Shown piece after piece: positions 388-9,085 of a stretch of 64,000 nt of DNA (its first letter is position 1; each line of letters begins with the position of its first letter). The stretch lies in sequence record MW812342.1; one strand, 5' to 3'. Under the pieces are notes generated by a model. That model was given only the letters and a program-made list of their open reading frames with translations. It ran no database searches and was not told the DNA's origin. The position numbers and the translations under genes were made by a program.

Positions 388-876
388 ATGACCACGATTG
401 CGTACGACGGAAAAACACTGGCGTCCGATAGCCAGTCGACTCAGGGTAACATCCGCGTGTCGAACTCTGCCATGAAAATCTTCGCCCGTGGTGAAGGTGA
501 CGATTGGTCTATCGAGGGAAAACGTATCGCGGCTTTCGGTGTGGCGGGTAATCTCCACGATGCCAAAGACCTGCGCCAGCGAATGTCATCGTTTGTCGGA
601 CACCATTCCGGTGACCACTTCGAGAACGGCTCCACGTTCGCGTTCATTGCAATCGCTGAAGACCACACCGTGTTCGTTGGCGGGAAGTATTCCGACGAAC
701 CACGTTCGTGGGTCATGGAAGCCGAAGCGCCGGTAGCGGTCGGTAGCGGTGGTGACTTCGCCCTCGGGGCCATGGCTGCCGGGGCAAAAGCCGAGGATGC
801 CGTTCGCATCGCTTCGAAGTTTGACGTGAACACCAATGACAGTGTCTCGTCCATCGATTGCTGGGGTAACACATGA
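388..876 (+). CDS. HslV/proteasome-beta-like Ntn-hydrolase
   Basis: N-terminal M-T-T-I (Thr nucleophile after Met removal), ASDSQST, MKIF (Lys) and AVGSGG motifs of the proteasome-beta/HslV fold. Confidence 0.75.
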   Translation: MTTIAYDGKTLASDSQSTQGNIRVSNSAMKIFARGEGDDWSIEGKRIAAFGVAGNLHDAKDLRQRMSSFVGHHSGDHFENGSTFAFIAIAEDHTVFVGGKYSDEPRSWVMEAEAPVAVGSGGDFALGAMAAGAKAEDAVRIASKFDVNTNDSVSSIDCWGNT

Positions 877-1208
877 GCAAAGAAAAAGTTCAACCGGAAC
901 TGGTGTTTGATTTTGCGTATCCGCTCGATGAGGCATGCGCGATTCTGGGGAATACCCGCGTACCAAAAATCGCGGCGCTGACGGATGTCGTTTCCACCGT
1001 CCAGTTTCACATGTGGGCTGCAACCGATTTGGTAACTGTGATGGTTCTGTCGAAAGACGGCGATGCCACGACGGTAAATACTTACCAAGGCTATAGTCCT
1101 GTAACCAAAATCGAATCCATCAACAACGCCATGGAGCAAGCACTCAAGACTGCATTGAAGTCTTGGGCCTATCTTCAGACGCGCAATTTGAGCGACGCGG
1201 TAGTCTAA
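873..1208 (+). CDS. hypothetical protein
   Basis: 111-aa ORF coupled by ATGA overlap to the upstream gene. Confidence 0.65.
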   Translation: MSKEKVQPELVFDFAYPLDEACAILGNTRVPKIAALTDVVSTVQFHMWAATDLVTVMVLSKDGDATTVNTYQGYSPVTKIESINNAMEQALKTALKSWAYLQTRNLSDAVV

Positions 1209-1231
1209 TTACAAGACTACCCTGTTGTATG
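1202..1231 (+). promoter_or_regulatory. putative phage promoter for tRNA transcript (AGTCTAATTACAAGA-N11-TATG)
   Basis: 15-bp exact repeat of 4376-4390 with TATG at the same offset; lies just before tRNA-Trp. Confidence 0.5.
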
Positions 1232-1255
1232 CTGAGAAGCACGTAATTGAATTCT

Positions 1256-1331
1256 AGGGGAGTAGCTCAGCTGGCAGAGCACCGGTCTCCAAAACCGGGT
1301 GTCCAGAGTTCGAATCTCTGTTCCCCTGCCA
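1256..1331 (+). tRNA. tRNA-Trp (CCA)
   Basis: AGGGGAG/TTCCCCT acceptor, CCGGT-CTCCAAA-ACCGG anticodon arm, TTCGAAT T-loop, encoded CCA; 76 nt. Confidence 0.95.
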
Positions 1332-1395
1332 AATTTAGCCAGCAAGAATGTGAGAAACCGCGGAAGACCAAATAGTCAATCGCTGGAGAATTCTC

Positions 1396-1617
1396 ATGAA
1401 CTTGTATTTGCTTGAACGTCAAGACGATGTCGGTTACGACGAGTTTGATTCCATAGTCGTTGCAGCTCCCTCGGAAGCTGTGGCGCGCGCAATTCGTCCA
1501 AGGGGTGGTTGGGTGTACGGTGAGGCATGGGATGAGGCGGAAACGCTGACCTGCACAAACATCGGAACCACACACCTCCCAATCGGTATTGTTCATGAAT
1601 CGTTTAATGCAGGCTGA
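1396..1617 (+). CDS. small hypothetical protein between tRNAs
   Basis: 73-aa ORF with GGAG Shine-Dalgarno. Confidence 0.65.
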   Translation: MNLYLLERQDDVGYDEFDSIVVAAPSEAVARAIRPRGGWVYGEAWDEAETLTCTNIGTTHLPIGIVHESFNAG

Positions 1618-1645
1618 ATAGGTGGGCTTCGGCCCACCAAACTCT

Positions 1646-1720
1646 GGGGCGCTGGCCGAGTGGCTTAGGCGCAGGATTGCAAATCCTGTTACCGCGGTTC
1701 AATTCCGCGGCGTCCCTCCA
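1646..1720 (+). tRNA. tRNA-Cys (GCA)
   Basis: GGGGCGC/GCGTCCC acceptor, CAGGA-TTGCAAA-TCCTG anticodon arm, U discriminator plus CCA. Confidence 0.95.
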
Positions 1721-1858
1721 AATACCCTGTCTCGCCCGACAGGATTTCTTTACAAAAACCCGTAGAGCCTTTCGGGGGTGAAGCCAGTTGGAGTGTTGCT
1801 ACTCTACGGTCTTCTACTCCTGGGCGCTGGCTCACCCACCTAAAGGATAAAAAGAATT

Positions 1859-2284
1859 ATGTTCGGTCTTTTCAAAAAACGCGCTAACCGTGCTATGTCT
1901 GAAATCAAAAAATTCGACAAACGTGACCTGGCAGAAGCCGTGGTTAACGCCGCTTACCTGATTGCGTACGCAGACGGCGAGCTGGAATCTTCTGAGAAAG
2001 CGAAAATCGATCAGGTGCTGCGCGCCAACCCGGTACTGTCTAACTTCCAGTCCGAGCTGAACGCAATTGCTTCTACTATCATCGCTCAGCTGGAAGCGGA
2101 CATCGACATCGGCCGTCGTGCTGCCCTGCGCCAGATTGCTGATGTGAAAGGCGACCAGCGCGAGTGTGAAGACGTTCTGGATGTTGCTGTGGCTATTGCC
2201 CGTGCTGATGGCGAAATCGAACCGGCAGAAGTTGAAATGCTGAAACAGATCGCCGAAGCGCTGGGTCTGCGTTACGACGCGTAA
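1859..2284 (+). CDS. terB: TerB-family (tellurite resistance-like) protein
   Basis: Two A(D)G-x-x-x-x-E repeats (IAYADGELESSE, IARADGEIEPAE) and all-helical pattern typical of TerB; AAGGA SD. Confidence 0.8.
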   Translation: MFGLFKKRANRAMSEIKKFDKRDLAEAVVNAAYLIAYADGELESSEKAKIDQVLRANPVLSNFQSELNAIASTIIAQLEADIDIGRRAALRQIADVKGDQRECEDVLDVAVAIARADGEIEPAEVEMLKQIAEALGLRYDA

Positions 2285-2287
2285 GCC

Positions 2288-2470
2288 ATGAAGCTGAAAA
2301 CCAAGTTATACATCGTGGCCGCGTTGCTGCTGATGCTGCTTGGCAACTTCGTTGGGCGTGCCTTCACGTTAATCGCCTACGTAGCTGTAATCGGCGTAGT
2401 AGCCTATCTGGTCTGGCCTGTCATCAAGAGGTTTGCGGCGAAGTCGCAGGCGAAGGTGAAAGGCAAGTAG
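2288..2470 (+). CDS. small membrane protein
   Basis: 60 aa, two hydrophobic segments followed by a basic tail; starts 3 nt after terB stop. Confidence 0.65.
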   Translation: MKLKTKLYIVAALLLMLLGNFVGRAFTLIAYVAVIGVVAYLVWPVIKRFAAKSQAKVKGK

Positions 2471-2476
2471 TAATTC

Positions 2477-2514
2477 GGTGCGGGGGTCGTTCCCTCCGCA
2501 CCACCCTTTTCTTC
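2477..2514 (+). terminator. putative intrinsic terminator/attenuator
   Basis: GGTGCGGGGG...CCCTCCGCACC hairpin followed by CTTTTCTTCT. Confidence 0.5.
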
Positions 2515-2536
2515 TCATCTAAAAATAGGTATAACC

Positions 2537-3376
2537 ATGAGAAAGGTGCTTTTCGGAATACTTGCAGCGTTGACGTTTAGCATGTCCGCCGTCGCGGCAG
2601 ACGAAGTAGTCATTACCACAGGACAGCAGGGCCTGACCTATAACTCGGTCTATGGCGTTAATCTGGCCGGTGCTATCAGCGAGTTCGGTACTCGTGCACG
2701 GGTCATCCCGTCGAAGGGGTCATTAGATAACCTCGACAAAGTTGCCGCAGGTGAAGCCCAGATTGGTTTCACGCAGGCAGATGCTTTCCAGTTCTGGCGC
2801 GCTAAGCACCCGAACGAAGCGCAGAACGTTGACATCGTCGGTCAGCTGGCCCGCGAATGTGTGTGGGTCGCTGTCAAGAAAGACGGCAAGGTCAAAGATG
2901 CGAAAGATTTAACCGATGGCGCGAAAATCGCCGTGGGTGAACCGGACTCCGGCTCGTACGCCAGTTGGCAATACCTGCAACAGTTGGTGAAAGAGTATTC
3001 CAAAGCGGAAACTTACGCCAAGGGTGGCATCCGTTCGTTGTCCAAAGTGGCAACGGGTGAATACGATGCGTTCCTGTGGGTGTCTGCGCCGGATAAAGGC
3101 AACAAATTCCTCGAAGCGGTCAATCAAGACAGTTCTGGTTTAGAGCTGATTGACATGAGCACATGGAACGTCAACGACAAACTGCCTAACGGCCAGTCGG
3201 TCTACACGAAAGAAACGGCCAAGACAGACAAGACCGCGTTCTTCGGTAAGAAAGTTGACGTCCCGTGCACCACCACACTCGTCGTGGCCAACACTGACGC
3301 CGGTGATGATCTGCTCGAAACCGTTTCTACCATCCTCCTGAAAAACAATTCACGAGTGATGGGGGACAAAAAATAA
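2537..3376 (+). CDS. TAXI-family (TRAP-like) periplasmic solute-binding protein
   Basis: Signal peptide ending AVAA; ITTGQQGLTY, SKGSLDNL, IGFTQADA and IAVGEPDSGS match TAXI-type binding-protein motifs. Confidence 0.75.
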   Translation: MRKVLFGILAALTFSMSAVAADEVVITTGQQGLTYNSVYGVNLAGAISEFGTRARVIPSKGSLDNLDKVAAGEAQIGFTQADAFQFWRAKHPNEAQNVDIVGQLARECVWVAVKKDGKVKDAKDLTDGAKIAVGEPDSGSYASWQYLQQLVKEYSKAETYAKGGIRSLSKVATGEYDAFLWVSAPDKGNKFLEAVNQDSSGLELIDMSTWNVNDKLPNGQSVYTKETAKTDKTAFFGKKVDVPCTTTLVVANTDAGDDLLETVSTILLKNNSRVMGDKK

Positions 3377-3384
3377 AAATATGT

Positions 3385-3995
3385 ACTGACCCAGTGCATC
3401 TTTTCGGGCTGGGTAGGGTTGATGTCCCTACCTGCGCGGTGTTCGTTAAGGCTGGTAACGTTCGCTGAGACCTGTCGCATACCCGTAAGTCGGCAGTAGC
3501 CGGTTACACAAAAGACTATCGCGTAAGCTGTGAAGTTTCCCCGGTAGGTAACCGACCGTTCACGATTTCATTAGGTGAGCAAATAATCTATGCAAGGACT
3601 TCTAGGATTTGTGCTCGACATGATGGGTAGCTTACGCCGCCTCATCAAGCAGTTACGAATCTGGAAGCTTGCCCATTACTGGTTTACAGGCGAAAAGGCT
3701 TCTCGTGAGAGAGCCACATGCAAACTGCGTATTTACATTAGTATGTTCACGGCTGTGAGCATAGGTCAAGCACCGGAACGATAAGCCGGACAGCTACGCC
3801 TGTAAAATACAATCTGAAAATCATAATGGGATTAAGTTCCCAGATTTGAAAAGGCGACTGTGTGTCGTCGGCGATAACCCCCTGTCGTGGACCAGGTTAT
3901 CCCAAAGGTAATGTGAAAGGGGTTGGTGCTTGGAGGCGCTAAGACCGGCGGATACGCTGGCTCAGAAGAAGAAGTCCATCAACCCCATTCTCACC
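3385..3995 (+). ncRNA. candidate large (~600 nt) structured non-coding RNA
   Basis: No convincing ORF; long-range helices 3521-29/3629-37, 3683-92/3797-3806, 3873-79/3895-3901 and 3919-28/3977-86 plus several local hairpins. Confidence 0.5.
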
Positions 3996-4046
3996 TAAGT
4001 GACTCTTTTACAAGATGTTACTTATATATGCGAAAGCGAGGTGAAC

Positions 4047-4373
4047 ATGGGAACGTATCGTGAAGGCCCTGAAAGCACGGTGACTCACCGTAGTCATGAT
4101 TACTCTGTGGATGCATTGCTGGATATAGCGGAACGTCATAGCCTCGTTCAAATTCCAGTGTCTAGGATAGAATGGATTTTAAACGAGACTACGCTCGAAG
4201 ATGAGCGAGTTAAGAGTGCAGATACAGATTATCCCATTATTGTGCTGCACGAAGGAAGTTTGTATATTGTATTAGACGGTGCCCATCGCCTTGCGAAGGC
4301 GGTTGCCGAAGGCAAGGATACCATTGCAGCCAAGATACTTGTGCCTGCTAATCTACCGAAACCGGTACGATAA
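4047..4373 (+). CDS. ParB/sulfiredoxin-like domain protein
   Basis: PIIV...IVLDGAHRLAKA motif (DG-x-HR); ATG 4047 follows GAGGTG SD. Confidence 0.7.
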   Translation: MGTYREGPESTVTHRSHDYSVDALLDIAERHSLVQIPVSRIEWILNETTLEDERVKSADTDYPIIVLHEGSLYIVLDGAHRLAKAVAEGKDTIAAKILVPANLPKPVR

Positions 4374-4375
4374 AA

Positions 4376-4405
4376 AGTCTAATTACAAGAATACACTGTA
4401 TTATG
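4376..4405 (+). promoter_or_regulatory. putative phage promoter for main tRNA cluster
   Basis: AGTCTAATTACAAGA identical to 1202-1216, with TATG 26 nt from motif start in both copies. Confidence 0.5.
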
Positions 4406-4492
4406 TCGGAAACCCGATTTGATGTTGCACAGGGCGTTACGCTGCGGCGTTTGCCGGTGTGCAGGGTTAGGTCGGGATTCTGGCACCTATTC

Positions 4493-4577
4493 GGCGGGTT
4501 ACTCAAGCGGCAACGAGAGCAGACTGTAAATCTGTTGACTTCGGTCTTCGGTGGTTCGAGTCCACCACACGCCACCA
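4493..4577 (+). tRNA. tRNA-Tyr (GTA)
   Basis: GCAGA-CTGTAAA-TCTGT anticodon arm, long variable arm, TTCGAGT T-loop, ACCA end; one G.A mismatch in acceptor. Confidence 0.92.
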
Positions 4578-4583
4578 AACAGT

Positions 4584-4658
4584 TGGGGTATAGCCAAGCG
4601 GTAAGGCCCAGGGCTTTGATCCCTGTATGCCTAGGTTCGATTCCTAGTGCCCCTGCCA
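4584..4658 (+). tRNA. tRNA-Gln (TTG)
   Basis: CAGGG-CTTTGAT-CCCTG anticodon arm, TTCGATT T-loop, GCCA end. Confidence 0.92.
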
Positions 4659-4664
4659 AACAAC

Positions 4665-4747
4665 GGAAGTAAAGCTCGCTGCTTCGGAAACTCATGGTGA
4701 AAAACCCGTGACCTTCCAGGCCGGTGCTATACCGGATGCTTCCACCA
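4665..4747 (+). ncRNA. degenerate tRNA-like RNA (non-canonical D/T loops, 8-nt anticodon loop)
   Basis: 7-bp acceptor GGAAGTA/TGCTTCC plus ACCA; TCATGG/CCGTGA arm; CCGG/CCGG T-like arm with TGCTATA loop. Confidence 0.65.
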
Positions 4748-4753
4748 AACAAT

Positions 4754-4973
4754 GGTACCTGTCACAGCAGCCCTTGAGGCTTACGCGAAGATGACTGGCC
4801 GCCCATTTTTACCGGGTAACACATTCCTGCCTGCGTGCTATTGCCGCTAAGGTTTGTCCCTGGTGTCGTGCGTCATTCGGGTCTACCCATGCTCTGCGGA
4901 GTGTGCGCTGATGTCTCGATAAACGCCATAGGGCCGCCTTGAGAACTCCGTGGAATTCGGAGGGGTACCACCC
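4754..4973 (+). ncRNA. tmRNA-like cloverleaf RNA with ~125-nt insert in place of anticodon loop
   Basis: GGTACCT/GGGTACC 7-bp acceptor plus A-CC; CTCCG-TGGAATT-CGGAG T-arm directly 5' of the acceptor strand; helix 4797-4804/4931-4938. Confidence 0.6.
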
Positions 4974-5048
4974 ATTCTTGTGTTTCCTTATCCTGAAGAC
5001 ATTCGTAAGACAAATCTATTCATGGTCGAGGAAGCACAGAACCCATTT

Positions 5049-5123
5049 AGGACTGTAGTTCAGTGGGAGAACGCCGCCCTGTCACGGCGGAGGTCGCGGG
5101 TTCGAAACCCGTCAGTCCTGCCA
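5049..5123 (+). tRNA. tRNA-Asp (GTC)
   Basis: AGGACTG/CAGTCCT acceptor, CCGCC-CTGTCAC-GGCGG arm, GCCA end. Confidence 0.95.
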
Positions 5124-5131
5124 GTTTCAAA

Positions 5132-5207
5132 TGCGTCTTAGCTCAGTTGGTAGAGCGCACCCCTGATAAGGGTGAGGTCACTGGTTCAAGTCCAGTAGAT
5201 GCAACCA
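5132..5207 (+). tRNA. tRNA-Ile (GAT)
   Basis: CACCC-CTGATAA-GGGTG arm, canonical D/T loops, ACCA end; 76 nt. Confidence 0.95.
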
Positions 5208-5213
5208 AACAAC

Positions 5214-5291
5214 GGTGTATGTAGTTCAGTTGGTTAGAATTCCGGCTTGTGACGTCGGAGGTCGAGAGTTCAAGTCTCTCCATACACCCCA
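5214..5291 (+). tRNA. tRNA-His (GTG)
   Basis: TTGTGAC anticodon loop, G-1:C73 His identity pair, CCA end. Confidence 0.95.
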
Positions 5292-5296
5292 TTTGC

Positions 5297-5372
5297 ATTC
5301 CCGTCATCTAGTTGGTTAGGATACGACACTTTCACTGTCGGTACACGAGTTCGAGTCTCGTCGGGAATACCA
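5297..5372 (+). tRNA. tRNA-Glu (TTC)
   Basis: ATTCCCG/CGGGAAT acceptor, CGACA-CTTTCAC-TGTCG arm, ACCA end. Confidence 0.95.
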
Positions 5373-5503
5373 TGTTATCCTCACGTAAATCATCGCCGGT
5401 GAGGGGTAAGGCAAGCTCCTGCCCCAATCCCATAATTACATCTCGGCTAAACACCGGGCGCTGTTGGTGTAGATGATACCCACTGGGTGTGAGGGGCCTA
5501 AAC

Positions 5504-5593
5504 GGAGAATTGACTGAGCGGCTAAAGGTGCTCCCCTGCTAAGGGAGTGTATGCGCAAGTGTACCATTGGTTCGAATCCAATATTCTCCGCCA
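5504..5593 (+). tRNA. tRNA-Ser (GCT)
   Basis: CTCCC-CTGCTAA-GGGAG arm, long variable arm, G discriminator plus CCA; 90 nt. Confidence 0.95.
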
Positions 5594-5769
5594 TGTTCTC
5601 TTGCTGTGGGAAATAGAAGCGAACGTAGAAACGCCGGTTAGCTCAAAGCTTAGAGCGTCTCATCTTCGGATGAGAAGGTTGGGGGTGCAACCCGAATTCC
5701 CTATCGGCAACGGCCTGCTTGTCAGGATTAGAAACATCTACGTGGATGGGAACTTCTACAGCAAGAACA
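5594..5769 (+). ncRNA. anticodon-less tRNA-like domain capping a long stem
   Basis: Cloverleaf 5633-5708 (GCTC/GAGC D-arm, TCTCATC-TTCG-GATGAGA arm) enclosed by helices 5623-29/5737-43 and 5600-11/5754-65. Confidence 0.6.
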
Positions 5770-5771
5770 AA

Positions 5772-5970
5772 ACAGTGGGAGCATTGTCCACTGTGACACC
5801 GGCAAAGGTTTCGTACCTTGCAGGTTGGGCGGAAGCCCGATGTTCCCCCGAACGCTGGCCTTCTGGCCGATACAGTGAAAGCTTACCCATGCCGTTGATC
5901 ACCTCTTCTGCTGCTGCCAACACACTGTATCACCGGAATCAGTCCTGCCTTAAATGGCAAGCGTTCACCC
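5772..5970 (+). ncRNA. candidate multi-helix structured RNA domain
   Basis: ACAGTGG/CCACTGT, GGGC-GGAA-GCCC, GAACGCT/AGCGTTC (5850/5960) and GATACAGTG/CACTGTATC (5869/5923). Confidence 0.45.
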
Positions 5971-5974
5971 ATTC

Positions 5975-6052
5975 GGTTCCCCAAGGCGGCTTGGGACATT
6001 ATCTCTCGGCTCTGTTGGGTAATGTCGTGGTTCAACTCCACAGGAATCACCA
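5975..6052 (+). ncRNA. degenerate tRNA-like RNA
   Basis: GGTTCC/GGAATC acceptor plus ACCA, GTGG-TTCAACT-CCAC T-arm, ACATTA/TAATGT arm with 18-nt loop. Confidence 0.5.
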
Positions 6053-6058
6053 AACAAT

Positions 6059-6127
6059 GGCCTCTCGCGATGGTGTGCTAAAAGCGCTTTATTGTGCTGC
6101 TAGGATGGTTCGAATCCGTCAGAGGCA
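6059..6127 (+). pseudogene. pseudo-tRNA (canonical T-arm, 6-nt anticodon loop, no CCA)
   Basis: GCCTCT/AGAGGC acceptor, GATGG-TTCGAAT-CCGTC T-arm, AGCGC-TTTATT-GTGCT arm. Confidence 0.5.
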
Positions 6128-6128
6128 A

Positions 6129-6204
6129 GAGCACCGCTGTTAAGCTGGTTAACACCCGACTCATAATCGGATATTCGCACGTTCGATTCGTGTCGGTGCT
6201 CGCC
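6129..6204 (+). tRNA. tRNA with CAT anticodon (Met or Ile2), atypical
   Basis: CCGA-CTCATAA-TCGG arm, GCACG-TTCGATT-CGTGT T-arm, 8-bp GAGCACCG/CGGTGCTC acceptor, ends GCCC. Confidence 0.8.
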
Positions 6205-6212
6205 CTTTTTTA

Positions 6213-6288
6213 GACTCTGTAGCTCAGTTGGTAGAGCGGATGACTGTTAATCATCAGGTCACAGGTTCAAGCCCTGTCAGAGTCGCCA
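6213..6288 (+). tRNA. tRNA-Asn (GTT)
   Basis: GACTCTG/CAGAGTC acceptor, GATGA-CTGTTAA-TCATC arm, GCCA end; 76 nt. Confidence 0.95.
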
Positions 6289-6559
6289 CATTTTGCATTG
6301 CCCGAGTCCCGAATGACATTCCGGAAAAATATCATCCATGGTCAAGGGCAGTGCAGAACCAAATTCCCGGCCCTTGCAGATAAAGCTTACCTGCATTAGC
6401 TGTCCCCTGCGGGGGTCGGGTACCACCTTTGTTCGTTTTGTTTTTTTCTTTCAATTGCCTGGCGGTATTGGTGGGAACAAAACGAATGAAGCCCTAGCGG
6501 GGGAAAAGCCGCTAACAACAACAGAAGCAGTAAAAACAGAAGTAAAAGCAGGAGTAGTT

Positions 6560-7372
6560 ATGTTTACTATCTTACGTAAAATCAATGGTAACCGCACACC
6601 AACCGAACACGAATCCCCAACGCTGGGTGATACGAAGTCACAAGTGTTCAAAGATGCGATGTCGCTTCTTACCGAATCCAACAACGTGCATAATTGCATG
6701 GATTCTGGAATGGATGCGAAGCCGTGGATTAACGGCAAATCTAAGCCTGTTGAAGAATGGGTAGAGCGCTTTAAGAAAGCGTTTGAGGTGGTCGACCCTG
6801 ACCCACAAGAGCTTATCGATCTGGTAAGTGAACTTTCTCCAGGAATGTTTGACAAAGCAAATGCGCGTTTTGCATCTCACTTTGGTCAGGTAGAAGATGC
6901 CTTCCTGAGAGACACCGGGCAAACCATCATCTGGTTAATACCTAAAGGTACCCCGATCGATAGCCAGTTCAAAGACATTCCACGCCAGTCTGTTGAAACC
7001 CTCCACACTACACTCGATTTCATCGAAGCTGATGAGATGAAGTTTGCTGTGTTCAATAGCAAGGCATTGTGGGATGGGTATAACTCCGCTGAACTGTTTG
7101 GCGGTGTAGCCACCGAGATTTCCTCGGTAGAACTCCAGCACATCTATCACGACGATATGGCGATGCCGCAAGAAGCGGTACTCAAAGCCAGCCGTCGGGG
7201 TGACCGTACGATGGAGCAGGTCATCGGGGTCCTTGCTTATGGCAACTCCGAAGAACCCGACCCTACCACGGGCAATGTGCCGGTCACAGTGATGACCTAC
7301 GAGTTTATCTACCAAGGCGATGAAGTCTACGTTACGAACCGTCACGGTAAGACAGTGGACTCCATCCGTTAA
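6560..7372 (+). CDS. hypothetical protein
   Basis: ATG 6560 after AGGAG SD (track start 6338 runs through structured non-coding sequence); 270 aa. Confidence 0.75.
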   Translation: MFTILRKINGNRTPTEHESPTLGDTKSQVFKDAMSLLTESNNVHNCMDSGMDAKPWINGKSKPVEEWVERFKKAFEVVDPDPQELIDLVSELSPGMFDKANARFASHFGQVEDAFLRDTGQTIIWLIPKGTPIDSQFKDIPRQSVETLHTTLDFIEADEMKFAVFNSKALWDGYNSAELFGGVATEISSVELQHIYHDDMAMPQEAVLKASRRGDRTMEQVIGVLAYGNSEEPDPTTGNVPVTVMTYEFIYQGDEVYVTNRHGKTVDSIR

Positions 7373-7476
7373 AGCATTAGCATGCTCGCTAATACCCGCC
7401 CTGAGGATTGGCCTCCTCGTGCTTGAAGGGCGACTCTCCTGTAGTACGCTTTGTAAGTCGACGTAAAATCGGTACG

Positions 7477-7519
7477 CCCTCTCCCCGAAAAGGGAGAGGG
7501 TAGTATCGTATATTTTTTT
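7477..7519 (+). terminator. intrinsic terminator
   Basis: CCCTCTCCC-CGAAAA-GGGAGAGGG with a downstream T-tract. Confidence 0.65.
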
Positions 7520-7525
7520 GGATAT

Positions 7526-7540
7526 ATATTACCTAGGTGA
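7526..7540 (+). promoter_or_regulatory. putative early (virion RNAP) promoter ATATTAYCNNNGTGA
   Basis: ATATTACCTAGGTGA; one of six copies in the window; resembles phiKZ early TATATTAC motif. Confidence 0.7.
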
Positions 7541-7589
7541 GATTAAACTATAATCTTTAACCTATCATTAGACTTTCGAGGATAAACTT

Positions 7590-8573
7590 ATGCATTACGC
7601 TCCAATGTCAGCACATGAAACCTTCGCCGCTCGTGGATACAGTCCAGAAGAAGGTAAACGTATTCGCGGCTATCTTCCGCGCCGCTTTGGCGATATCAGT
7701 AATGCCCTGCCCCTGACAAACGCTGAGTTCTGGCTGGCGTACGAGTGCATGAAGCACTACAATGACAATAGCCGCGAGCGTGGCCGCTTCTACGCCGCAG
7801 GTCCATTCAACTTCCAATCTAACGGGAAGGTCAACTATCGTTCTGAAAAGCTTAACGAAGATTTCTCCATGGTGGAATTCATCCGCCACTTTGGGGACAC
7901 GGTGTTCACCGACTTCGATGCTGAGTTAGGCATGAAAGTTCCACGCACTAATGCGGACGGTTCGTTGGTCATGAAGAACCGTATGGTGGCCACGCGTTTG
8001 GTCGAGATTGAGAAACAGGCACAACCGCAATCTGAAGACTTCTCAAGCTGGCACACCGCAAGCTGGATGAACTTCCCCGTCGGGTCACTCTCTCTACCGC
8101 CGACAGGTAACATTACACCCGAAACGGTATTGATGGCATCCCTGCACGGTACGATGGTACAAGAGTATGTTAATACGCAGGCCGGACGTATGTTGCATCC
8201 AACCCTTGATTATAAATGGGTGGCAACTTATGTCTATCTGAAACGCCTGTATCATGCGCGCGACCGTCAGTTCGGTCAGGACTACCATGGCATTCGTAGC
8301 ACGATTGAGATGAACCTACGCTTCCGTACAAGCACCGCCATGTACCCAAGCGATGTCATGACGCCGCCGCACTACTTCCACATCGATGCGGATCGCGTTA
8401 TGACTGCAAACGGTATCATGAATTTCCCACGTTTACACAATACAAAACCCATGGGCTTTTACGAGTCCATGTACCGCTTCAACAACAACGGCCATGTCGC
8501 CGCCATCACAACCATCCCCACTGAACTTTTCGATGAGTACAGTGAAGAGGATTGGAAAGCAGTTTTAGCATAA
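7590..8573 (+). CDS. hypothetical early protein
   Basis: 327-aa ORF, GAGGA SD, downstream of the early-promoter motif. Confidence 0.8.
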   Translation: MHYAPMSAHETFAARGYSPEEGKRIRGYLPRRFGDISNALPLTNAEFWLAYECMKHYNDNSRERGRFYAAGPFNFQSNGKVNYRSEKLNEDFSMVEFIRHFGDTVFTDFDAELGMKVPRTNADGSLVMKNRMVATRLVEIEKQAQPQSEDFSSWHTASWMNFPVGSLSLPPTGNITPETVLMASLHGTMVQEYVNTQAGRMLHPTLDYKWVATYVYLKRLYHARDRQFGQDYHGIRSTIEMNLRFRTSTAMYPSDVMTPPHYFHIDADRVMTANGIMNFPRLHNTKPMGFYESMYRFNNNGHVAAITTIPTELFDEYSEEDWKAVLA

Positions 8574-8578
8574 CTTCA

Positions 8579-8609
8579 AAGCGGGATTAAAACCCCGCTT
8601 TATTTTTTT
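8579..8609 (+). terminator. intrinsic terminator
   Basis: AAGCGGG...CCCGCTT followed by TATTTTTTT. Confidence 0.65.
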
Positions 8610-8644
8610 ACTTGAATTCCTGATTTATATAGGAGGGTAACATC

Positions 8645-9085
8645 ATGAAATCCAATTTGGCACACAGCTTTAACATCGTCCCGTTCTACCAACCAATCGA
8701 AATGACCCGTGCGTTAACCGATGGTTATCTGCCAGAAACTTTTATACCCAAAGGTCGCTACGACGAAATGTTGTTGGAGACGATATTCCCTATTATCACC
8801 TCTCATCCGCTGTTCAGAGAGTTTTCGTCTAAGCTGGCGTACCAAGACGGTACGGCTTTCCGTAAGGGTGAAGATGTTCCGGTGATTACCACCACGTACA
8901 ATATCTCACGAGAAGAAGCAGCCGCTATGGAGCATGACCCGGATGTATTCTTCCGGTTCATGAAGTCAATGGCCGAAGCCCTCGAAAAACGAGCCCTGCC
9001 GTTCGAGGAAATCTTCGCTGTTCTTCTTGACGCTATCTGCGCAAGTGACTTTGCCATGTTCCACAACATGAGCAGTCTGCACTAA
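8645..9085 (+). CDS. hypothetical protein
   Basis: 146 aa, AGGAGG SD. Confidence 0.75.
   Translation: MKSNLAHSFNIVPFYQPIEMTRALTDGYLPETFIPKGRYDEMLLETIFPIITSHPLFREFSSKLAYQDGTAFRKGEDVPVITTTYNISREEAAAMEHDPDVFFRFMKSMAEALEKRALPFEEIFAVLLDAICASDFAMFHNMSSLH

Follow-up and report, generated by a model that had tools for sequence, protein, structure and literature searches.

The stretch of DNA analysed here (the window; 64,000 nucleotides (nt)) is identical in sequence and coordinates to Erwinia phage pEa_SNUABM_10 (MW812342.1), a jumbo phage of the genus Machinavirus with a 239 kb genome. Machinaviruses encode split beta/beta' RNA polymerases and lack a recognisable sigma factor (PMC7823757). ARAGORN identified nine tRNA genes at 4493–6288, all on the plus strand. 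Between tRNA-Ser(GCU) (5504–5593, plus strand; Rfam tRNA, 51.1 bits), which carries an encoded CCA, and tRNA-Met (6129–6204) there is a 535-nt gap, and it is in this gap that we find the element described here, a candidate RNA module of 176 nt that is structured, non-decoding and derived from a tRNA (5594–5769, plus strand; MFE and consensus folds, covariance model R1). The original prediction placed its start directly behind the CCA of tRNA-Ser and, because ARAGORN ends tRNA-Ser(gct) at 5593, the 5′ boundary is indeed 5594.

A repeated 30-mer occurs at 1202 and 4376, each time preceding a tRNA block, 6409–6450 resembles a terminator, with a hairpin and a U tract, and no sigma-70-like promoter was found inside the tRNA cluster; together, these observations suggest a single tRNA/ncRNA operon of about 2 kb. 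The operon contains further conserved, closed and structured spacers at 5373–5503, 5770–6040 and 6289–6450. A Pfam search of ten neighbouring proteins (388–9085) revealed no linked partner gene, the neighbours being TerB-like, solute-binding-like or unknown. In the GenBank record of pEa_SNUABM_10 the element is unannotated and locus tag 00020 is skipped, and in the records of the relatives Huxley, Machina and Parshik a 98-amino-acid hypothetical protein (gp16 to gp18) is annotated over it.

Across Machinavirus relatives the tRNA cluster is a mosaic of cassettes. In pSal04 and pEa_SNUABM_43, the element is immediately preceded by a tRNA-like RNA of non-canonical form, about 100 nt long and ending in CCA, and pEa_SNUABM_43 lacks tRNA-Ser entirely; in pEa_SNUABM_6 a degenerate tRNA-like piece of 78 nt takes the 5′ position. 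The pEa_SNUABM_6 cluster also holds an HNH/NUMOD4 homing endonuclease gene. The start base of the element is constant in all Machinavirus contexts, right after a tRNA-like 3′ end.

The predicted structure is a cloverleaf (5633–5708) nested within two further helices, all on the plus strand. The outer closing helix pairs 5599–5611 with 5754–5766 over 13 bp, two of them G·U (MFE and consensus folds, with substitutions also bearing on the 3′ strand). It is followed by a large internal loop, identified from the alignment and the fold, with a 5′ side at 5612–5622 (AAAUAGAAGCG) that does not vary in the alignment of the Machinavirus subclade and a 3′ side at 5744–5753. The middle helix then joins 5623–5629 to 5737–5743 over 7 bp (consensus, and covariation with the distant homologue L011 described below). 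Within it, the cloverleaf starts with an acceptor-like stem of six rather than seven pairs, including one G·U (5633–5638, GCCGGT, with 5703–5708, ATCGGC; sequence and consensus); its 3′ strand is followed by AACGG, with no CCA. A UA (TA) linker leads to a D arm (5641–5656; sequence and consensus) comprising a 4-bp stem (GCUC/GAGC; 5641–5644/5653–5656) and an 8-nt loop, AAAGCUUA (5645–5652; AAAGCTTA in DNA letters), which lacks G18G19 and contains the palindrome AAGCUU. At the anticodon position (5658–5675), sequence and folds show no 7-nt anticodon loop and instead a closed hairpin, in which a 7-bp stem (5658–5664/5669–5675) is capped by a UUCG loop (5665–5668; sequence, MFE and consensus). 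The equivalent of the variable loop is AGGUU (5676–5680; sequence and alignment to the tRNA model), and the T arm (5681–5702; sequence) combines a 5-bp stem, GGGGG/UCCCU (5681–5685/5698–5702), with a 12-nt loop, UGCAACCCGAAU, whereas a canonical T loop has 7 nt. All parts of this inner domain are present in the sequence where they had been predicted. On the 3′ side, the consensus adds a small hairpin, CCUG-CUUGU-CAGG (5714–5726; stem 5714–5717/5723–5726), which forms a three-way junction with the acceptor stem and the middle helix.

The MFE, the centroid and the RNAalifold consensus of five relatives share the outer helix, the middle helix, the D arm and the UUCG hairpin, and the acceptor stem was recovered both by the consensus and by folding 5633–5708 alone. 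Both enclosing helices of the original prediction are thus recovered, the outer one at 13 bp. The outermost 4 bp that it proposed (5594–5597/5766–5769) are not supported: they compete with U5599–A5766, and A5769 is a C in pEa_SNUABM_43. In the T region, the pairing given by the folding programs differs from a 5-bp stem with a 12-nt loop; we prefer the 5-bp stem, as had been predicted, because G5681 changes to A opposite U5702. The fold of the single sequence (−59.8 kcal/mol; z = −2.79) was equalled by 2 of 200 shuffled sequences and is thus moderately better than chance, and the comparative evidence is stronger. The minus strand folds with z = −3.26, so that folding energy does not separate the strands. 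Two tertiary contacts were considered and rejected. Inspection revealed no convincing complement for Watson–Crick pairing between the D and T loops, and a conserved pseudoknot between CCCG of the T loop and UGGG (5748–5751) was discarded because it has no counterpart in L011.

We then compared six distinct Machinavirus versions of the element. Identity is 98% in five Machinavirus relatives, which include Huxley, pSal04, pEa_SNUABM_6 and the metagenomic contig L027, and this high value may partly reflect the region, because the neighbouring spacers are likewise conserved and structured. In pEa_SNUABM_43 identity is 90%, the anticodon-position hairpin being the sole large difference. Real tRNAs of the same cluster are 84–100% identical, and the next coding sequence 83–88%. 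At variable stem positions, pairing is kept at all ten and broken at none. The G5637·U5704 pair becomes A–U in two variants and G5681·U5702 becomes A–U in pEa_SNUABM_43; changes at 5644, 5656 and 5661 convert a C–G or G–C pair to G·U, which is the outcome of both changes in the D stem and, as C–G to U·G, of that in the anticodon-position hairpin of pSal04; and changes at 5675 and 5763 turn U–A into U·G (U5602–A5763 in two relatives). In pEa_SNUABM_42 and pEa_SNUABM_43 another hairpin, again with a 7-bp stem but with 5 nt in its loop, stands in for the whole anticodon-position hairpin (UCUUACC-CUAGC-GGUAAGG in pEa_SNUABM_43), with full compensation at 5661/5672 and 5663/5670. The other variation, nine single-base positions and one inserted base (in pEa_SNUABM_43), falls entirely in loops or linkers. 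The consensus contains five G·U pairs, and these, together with the G·U/A–U and C–G/U·G alternations, can pair only on the plus strand, which places the RNA on the plus strand; this is also the strand of the tRNAs. The substitution pattern indicates that the element is under selection as a plus-strand RNA.

No established RNA family accounts for the element. Among 4,227 Rfam models, applied to the window at gathering cut-off, to 4300–6900 at E ≤ 10 and to the element alone at E ≤ 10, the only alignment on the element was a sub-threshold one to tRNA (RF00005; 15 bits against a cut-off of 29; E = 1.2 with 186 nt searched alone), and window-wide Rfam searches gave no tRNA match there. ARAGORN called no tRNA on the element in the window or in four relatives. 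The features that fail the definition of a tRNA are the 7-bp stem with UUCG, the 6-bp acceptor and the AACGG where CCA is expected. Comparison with the YrlA and GOLLD models, which the original prediction had proposed as a check, gave no match to either. For YrlA (RF02553), nothing overlapped 5594–5769 at E ≤ 10, and two weak matches (23–24 bits; cut-off 69) fall on real tRNAs; GOLLD and ROOL had no Rfam match at gathering score or at E ≤ 10. Both of the latter are phage-borne, non-coding, highly structured RNAs that often adjoin tRNA genes, and they are several-fold larger than the element and differ from it in architecture. Rfam gave no match to tmRNA, and ARAGORN found none. A MITE-like mobile element was also rejected, there being a single copy per genome and no conservation of the ends.

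The distribution of the element is narrow. Each genome record holds one copy, and the window gave one match to the R1 covariance model. BLAST of the element against 50,697 phage records returned matches only in ten records of the Machinavirus subclade. An R1 search showed the element to be absent from Caitlin, ChrisDB and pEa_SNUABM_4, which belong to the same genus and have tRNA-Ser and tRNA-Asn in common with the window. Exact-motif scans of IMG/VR, JGI metagenomes and 185,579 prokaryotic genomes retrieved only Huxley, L027 (a Machina-like contig), L011 and L028. Other candidates were discarded: matches in L009, L010, L012, L013, L014, L026, L029 and L031 were chance occurrences inside coding-looking sequence, those to a D-stem plus T-loop pattern were mostly ordinary tRNAs, and a 30-bit R1 match in L038 was a normal tRNA-Ala.

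L011 (the same as L015), found by scanning IMG/VR with the D-arm 18-mer, is a 262-kb uncultivated metagenomic jumbo phage; L028, from another metagenome, is identical to it. The RecA-like gene of L011 shares less than 50% identity with its counterparts in phage NCTB, Dickeya JA29 and the Erwinia Alexandraviruses, and we found no proteins common to the neighbourhood of the L011 copy and the window. The copy lies between the RecA-like gene and a tRNA-Lys that begins 54 nt downstream. The stretch comprising UA and the D arm (5639–5656; UAGCUCAAAGCUUAGAGC) is identical to the window at 18 of 18 positions and the T loop (AACCCGAAUUCC) at 12 of 12. The stems around these loops differ in sequence and still pair, both in the acceptor (GUUCCU/AGGGAC) and in the T stem. 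In the middle helix, six of seven pairs are altered on both sides with pairing kept. The anticodon position is occupied by a closed hairpin of 44 nt, a longer 3′ hairpin lies where the window has 5714–5726, and the whole is enclosed by the helix AUUAAACG/CGUUUAAU with an outer UAUACG/CGUAUA. The closing helices thus differ between L011 and the window, and the inner loops are identical.

In a joint alignment of seven versions (A4), which was fitted to the covariance model, the paired fraction of cells is 99.4%. Both partners have changed in 17 of the 46 pairs, although most of these double changes represent one event each, because there are effectively two lineages separated by one deep split. 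None of 500 shuffles attained these values, and slid controls gave 0–3. The L011 copy scores 22.9 bits with R1, a value that means little alone because ordinary tRNAs reach 20–30 bits; the weight for homology therefore rests on the common non-tRNA features. Its MFE is no better than that of shuffled sequences (z = −0.88). The original prediction had proposed covariation among relatives as a check, and paired changes occur both in the Machinavirus versions and in L011. By these comparisons, L011 carries a homologue with the same enclosing architecture in an unrelated jumbo phage. The copy in L011 had no BLAST match among the 50,697 phage records, and R1 found none in the IMG/VR relatives of L011 (filters off) or in phage NCTB, Dickeya JA29 and pEa_SNUABM_1. 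The distribution is sporadic, which indicates an accessory character.

The UUCG tetraloop, which had been read as a sign of selection, does not survive this comparison, as the hairpin that bears it is replaced in pEa_SNUABM_42/43 and in L011. It is the D arm and the enlarged T loop that do not vary. What is conserved is a closed arm together with a non-canonical ‘elbow’ of D and T loops, and not the UUCG loop.

Taken together, the folding and substitution patterns indicate that 5594–5769 encode a structured plus-strand RNA derived from a tRNA gene. The likeness to a canonical tRNA, which is probably its ancestor, extends to the order and spacing of the cloverleaf, the UA linker, the D stem (UAGCUC...GAGC), the 5-nt variable loop, the 5-bp T stem and the location in a tRNA array. 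Unlike in a tRNA, the 7-nt anticodon loop is replaced by a closed arm that may have a 4-nt loop, a 5-nt loop or a long form, the D loop has no GG, and the 12-nt T loop has no UUC. The features for decoding and charging have all been lost, as shown by the closed anticodon arm, the 6-bp acceptor, the missing CCA and the non-canonical D and T loops, and the enclosing stem and the 3′ hairpin are gains relative to a tRNA. The sealing of the anticodon loop and the clamping of both ends in a long stem leave the element unable to decode. The core of the original prediction, that this is a selected, structured, non-decoding tRNA-like RNA and not a decaying tRNA, is supported by the finding that all stem substitutions keep pairing.

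Its predicted role is probably that of a stable decoy in the shape of a tRNA, or of a module for processing. It would be transcribed together with the rest of the phage tRNA operon (roughly 4400–6450), and the enzymes responsible for maturing the adjacent tRNAs would release it from this transcript. Its 5′ end would arise at maturation of the upstream tRNA CCA end, and its 3′ end from cleavage in the A-rich linker after 5766. We predict that it is a poor substrate for RNase P, because it has six acceptor pairs and no CCA; YrlA RNAs that lack a 7-bp acceptor are likewise not cut by this enzyme (PMC4201824). The closing helix would therefore be retained and could shield both ends from exonucleases, giving a stable species of about 170–176 nt.

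In the least certain step, this RNA would act in trans as a tRNA-shaped ligand. The D arm and enlarged T loop may together make up a specialised ‘elbow’ for binding a protein, of the host or of the phage, that normally handles tRNA bodies, so that the RNA would serve as a sponge, decoy or scaffold barred from translation, and the arm at the anticodon position would be required only to stay closed. Invariant 8-nt and 12-nt loops amid freely varying stems argue for a specific partner or a tertiary fold rather than for a generic hairpin, and the dispensable, patchy distribution points to a trans-acting accessory RNA. Whether the elbow mimics that of a real tRNA body is uncertain, because the nucleotides of the canonical elbow are missing from the D and T loops. 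We tentatively prefer a trans-acting accessory RNA that is recognised by a specific partner through its unusual ‘elbow’, while holding this reading with less than even confidence.

The main alternative, which deserves serious attention even if it is not likely, is that the element acts in cis to process or stabilise the polycistronic tRNA precursor and has no function after excision, in which case it might insulate tRNA folding, direct cuts by RNase E, III or P, or block 3′–5′ exonucleases. The element always adjoins a tRNA or tRNA-like 3′ end or, in L011, lies just 5′ of a tRNA; it is accompanied in the operon by several other conserved, closed, structured spacers; and a closing helix with an internal loop recalls processing stems. 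A generic spacer, however, would have no need of identical 8-nt and 12-nt loops in two very divergent phages in which the stems change, and sister phages manage without the element although they carry the same tRNA-Ser and tRNA-Asn.

It is rather doubtful that the element is the 5′ domain of a larger ncRNA of about 440–535 nt that takes up the entire space from tRNA-Ser to tRNA-Met (5594 to about 6030–6128). The whole gap is 88–99% identical among the subclade, 5770–6040 folds into more closed domains with compensatory changes, and the D-loop octamer AAAGCUUA recurs at 5878 and 6382. But the element closes on itself, the L011 copy stands alone with tRNA-Lys 54 nt after it, and Caitlin-type phages retain part of 5901–6030 without the element, from which we conclude that the element is a separable module.

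We consider it very improbable that the element is a neutrally decaying tRNA pseudogene with flanks that are complementary by chance. Other degenerate tRNA-like pieces do occur in the cluster, and the tRNA model aligns weakly (15 bits), but drift of this kind is at odds with pairing kept at 10 of 10 variable stem positions, with the compensated hairpin swap, with an identity of 98% compared with 84–100% for the tRNAs and 83–88% for the next coding sequence, and with a homologue in an unrelated phage that has the same non-tRNA features.

A protein-coding function has next to no probability. In every relative an open frame runs through the element, with a 198-amino-acid open reading frame at 5547–6143 in the window and the 98-amino-acid hypothetical protein annotated in the three GenBank records, but its start lies within tRNA-Ser or immediately behind it, in Huxley and pSal04 it departs from the frame of the window after about 75 codons, and nine consecutive residues are changed by a hairpin swap that keeps RNA pairing. 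The substitutions obey RNA pairing rules, and it is these, together with the frameshifts in relatives, that lead us to reject the coding reading.

Equally remote is a bacterial-type Y RNA (YrlA) binding Ro60/Rsr: both join a tRNA-like module to a long stem (PMC4201824), but the element has no Rfam YrlA match even at E ≤ 10, carries its stem on the acceptor side and not the anticodon side, contains no GNCGAAN0-1G motif (its sole CGAA sites read AGCGAA and CCCGAA) and has no TROVE/Ro60 domain among the ten neighbouring proteins scanned (388–9085; Pfam).

The element belongs with the non-decoding tRNA-like RNAs of phages and bacteria. Its closest precedent by architecture is the bacterial Y RNAs (YrlA), and by context T4 rnaC/rnaD. 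Like the element, YrlA is non-decoding and has a long stem fused to a tRNA-like domain that bears D and T arms (PMC4201824). In YrlA, however, the long stem replaces the anticodon arm and a loop closes the acceptor, whereas the element has a closed anticodon arm and an acceptor enclosed by the long stem. The original prediction had already described this layout as a different one, and the exit of the stem from the acceptor side and the missing match to the YrlA model bear it out (PMC4201824). YrlA is also linked to rsr and has the GNCGAAN0-1G motif (PMC4201824), neither of which is seen at the element. T4 rnaC (species 1 RNA) and rnaD, two small stable RNAs with no known role, come from the tRNA cluster of T4 (PMC3014915). 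Like the element, they are encoded on the tRNA strand of a phage tRNA cluster, directly after a tRNA, and rnaC is likewise tRNA-like and non-decoding, with an acceptor-like stem, a T arm and long hairpins in place of the decoding arms. Unlike the element, rnaC has a canonical UUCGAAU T loop, makes its acceptor from its own ends and lacks the enclosing stem, the D arm and the 3′ hairpin. With filters off, R1 gave 2.9 bits over T4 rnaC and nothing meaningful over rnaD, and on this score we reject homology to either.

Phage tRNA clusters are usually read only as a supply of tRNAs for codon usage or anti-defence, and inserts other than tRNAs are passed over or wrongly annotated as hypothetical proteins, which is what happened in the three GenBank records here. 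The present case indicates that at least some of these inserts are selected tRNA-derived RNAs built unable to decode, and offers a second, independent and experimentally tractable instance of the decades-old rnaC/rnaD puzzle. A true decoy of a tRNA-handling enzyme or of a tRNA-targeting defence would add an RNA-only mechanism to phage counter-defence, and a true processing module would represent tRNA-like punctuation within a phage operon; the CDS annotations over the element warrant removal under either reading. More speculatively, and at a probability that we regard as low, the element could represent an undescribed family of phage tRNA mimics for RNA-based counter-defence or host takeover, whose elbow would tie up either a host enzyme that binds tRNAs or an immune nuclease directed at them, while the sealed arm and clamped ends would keep the RNA from translation and exonucleases. 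The D-loop palindrome AAGCUU might also allow self-association, and the same palindrome recurs in two other loops of the operon.

Beyond the element, the non-decoding tRNA-like RNA at 5594-5769, the gap between tRNA-Ser and tRNA-Met continues in structured sequence. Folding of 5770-6040 gave at least two more closed domains, at about 5777-5847 and 5848-6031. Several compensatory changes were found across this segment among the relatives, which are 88-99% identical here, and the domains are probably further structured RNAs. An open frame of 198 codons (5547-6143, + strand) starts within tRNA-Ser, runs through the non-coding gap and ends in tRNA-Met. It is interrupted by frameshifts in relatives. 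Such an open frame across non-coding sequence is unusual as a chance event, and the hypothetical-protein annotations in the Huxley, Machina and Parshik records probably stem from it.

The cluster also holds other odd tRNA-like sequences. A second one in the window lies immediately 5′ of tRNA-Met, at about 6036-6128, and has a canonical T arm (GGTTCGAATCC). Neither ARAGORN nor Rfam detects it in the window; its counterparts in relatives were called as tRNA-??? (with a two-base anticodon), tRNA-Ile(aat, 94-97 nt) or tRNA-Pro(cgg). In pSal-SNUABM-04 (L003:1597-1699) and pEa_SNUABM_43 (L005:1401-1503), an RNA some 100 nt long, tRNA-like but non-canonical, adjoins the element on its upstream side, and in pEa_SNUABM_43 it stands in place of tRNA-Ser. 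This RNA, for which ARAGORN made no call in either phage, has an acceptor of 7 bp and a CCA end; its T arm is canonical, its variable region is long, and it contains a GUAAAAG loop. In pEa_SNUABM_6, an HNH/NUMOD4 homing endonuclease gene (L004:2168-2686) is inserted within the tRNA cluster, at the site taken up in the window by the odd tRNA-like sequence and tRNA-Met. The insertion, which resembles SegB in the T4 tRNA cluster, fits a cassette-like mosaicism of the tRNA region.

Folding also predicted a closed structure between tRNA-Glu and tRNA-Ser (5373-5503), a spacer with no match in Rfam. A 54-nt stretch of it, the core at 5423-5476, shares 96% identity with Shewanella phage SXP01 and 85-89% with about ten Klebsiella and Serratia jumbo phages of 300 kb. 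It looks like a small module common to distant phages.

Several motifs recur around the cluster. Two copies of a 30-mer (AGTCTAATTACAAGA...; 1202-1231 and 4376-4405, 87% identical) lie one shortly 5′ of each of two tRNA blocks, making the repeat a candidate promoter for the phage’s own sigma-less RNA polymerase. The octamer that forms the D loop of the element, AAAGCTTA (palindromic core AAGCTT), occurs five times in the whole window versus 1.3 expected; three + strand copies fall in non-tRNA spacers of the operon (5645, 5878 and 6382). The octamer may serve as a common protein site or in loop-loop contacts. Each copy has a CCCGAA within about 30-75 nt, a weak link because CCCGAA is common genome-wide. 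By eye, a motif CATGGTC[G/A]AGG..GCACAGAACC.A.TT was seen shortly 5′ of tRNA-Asp (5015-5048) and again at 6332-6372 in the spacer after tRNA-Asn; it was not among the repeats reported by the repeat finder.

That last spacer (6289-6450) is itself structured and conserved, with a long hairpin at 6291-6358. At its end (6409-6450), a terminator-like hairpin followed by a U tract likely marks the end of the tRNA operon.
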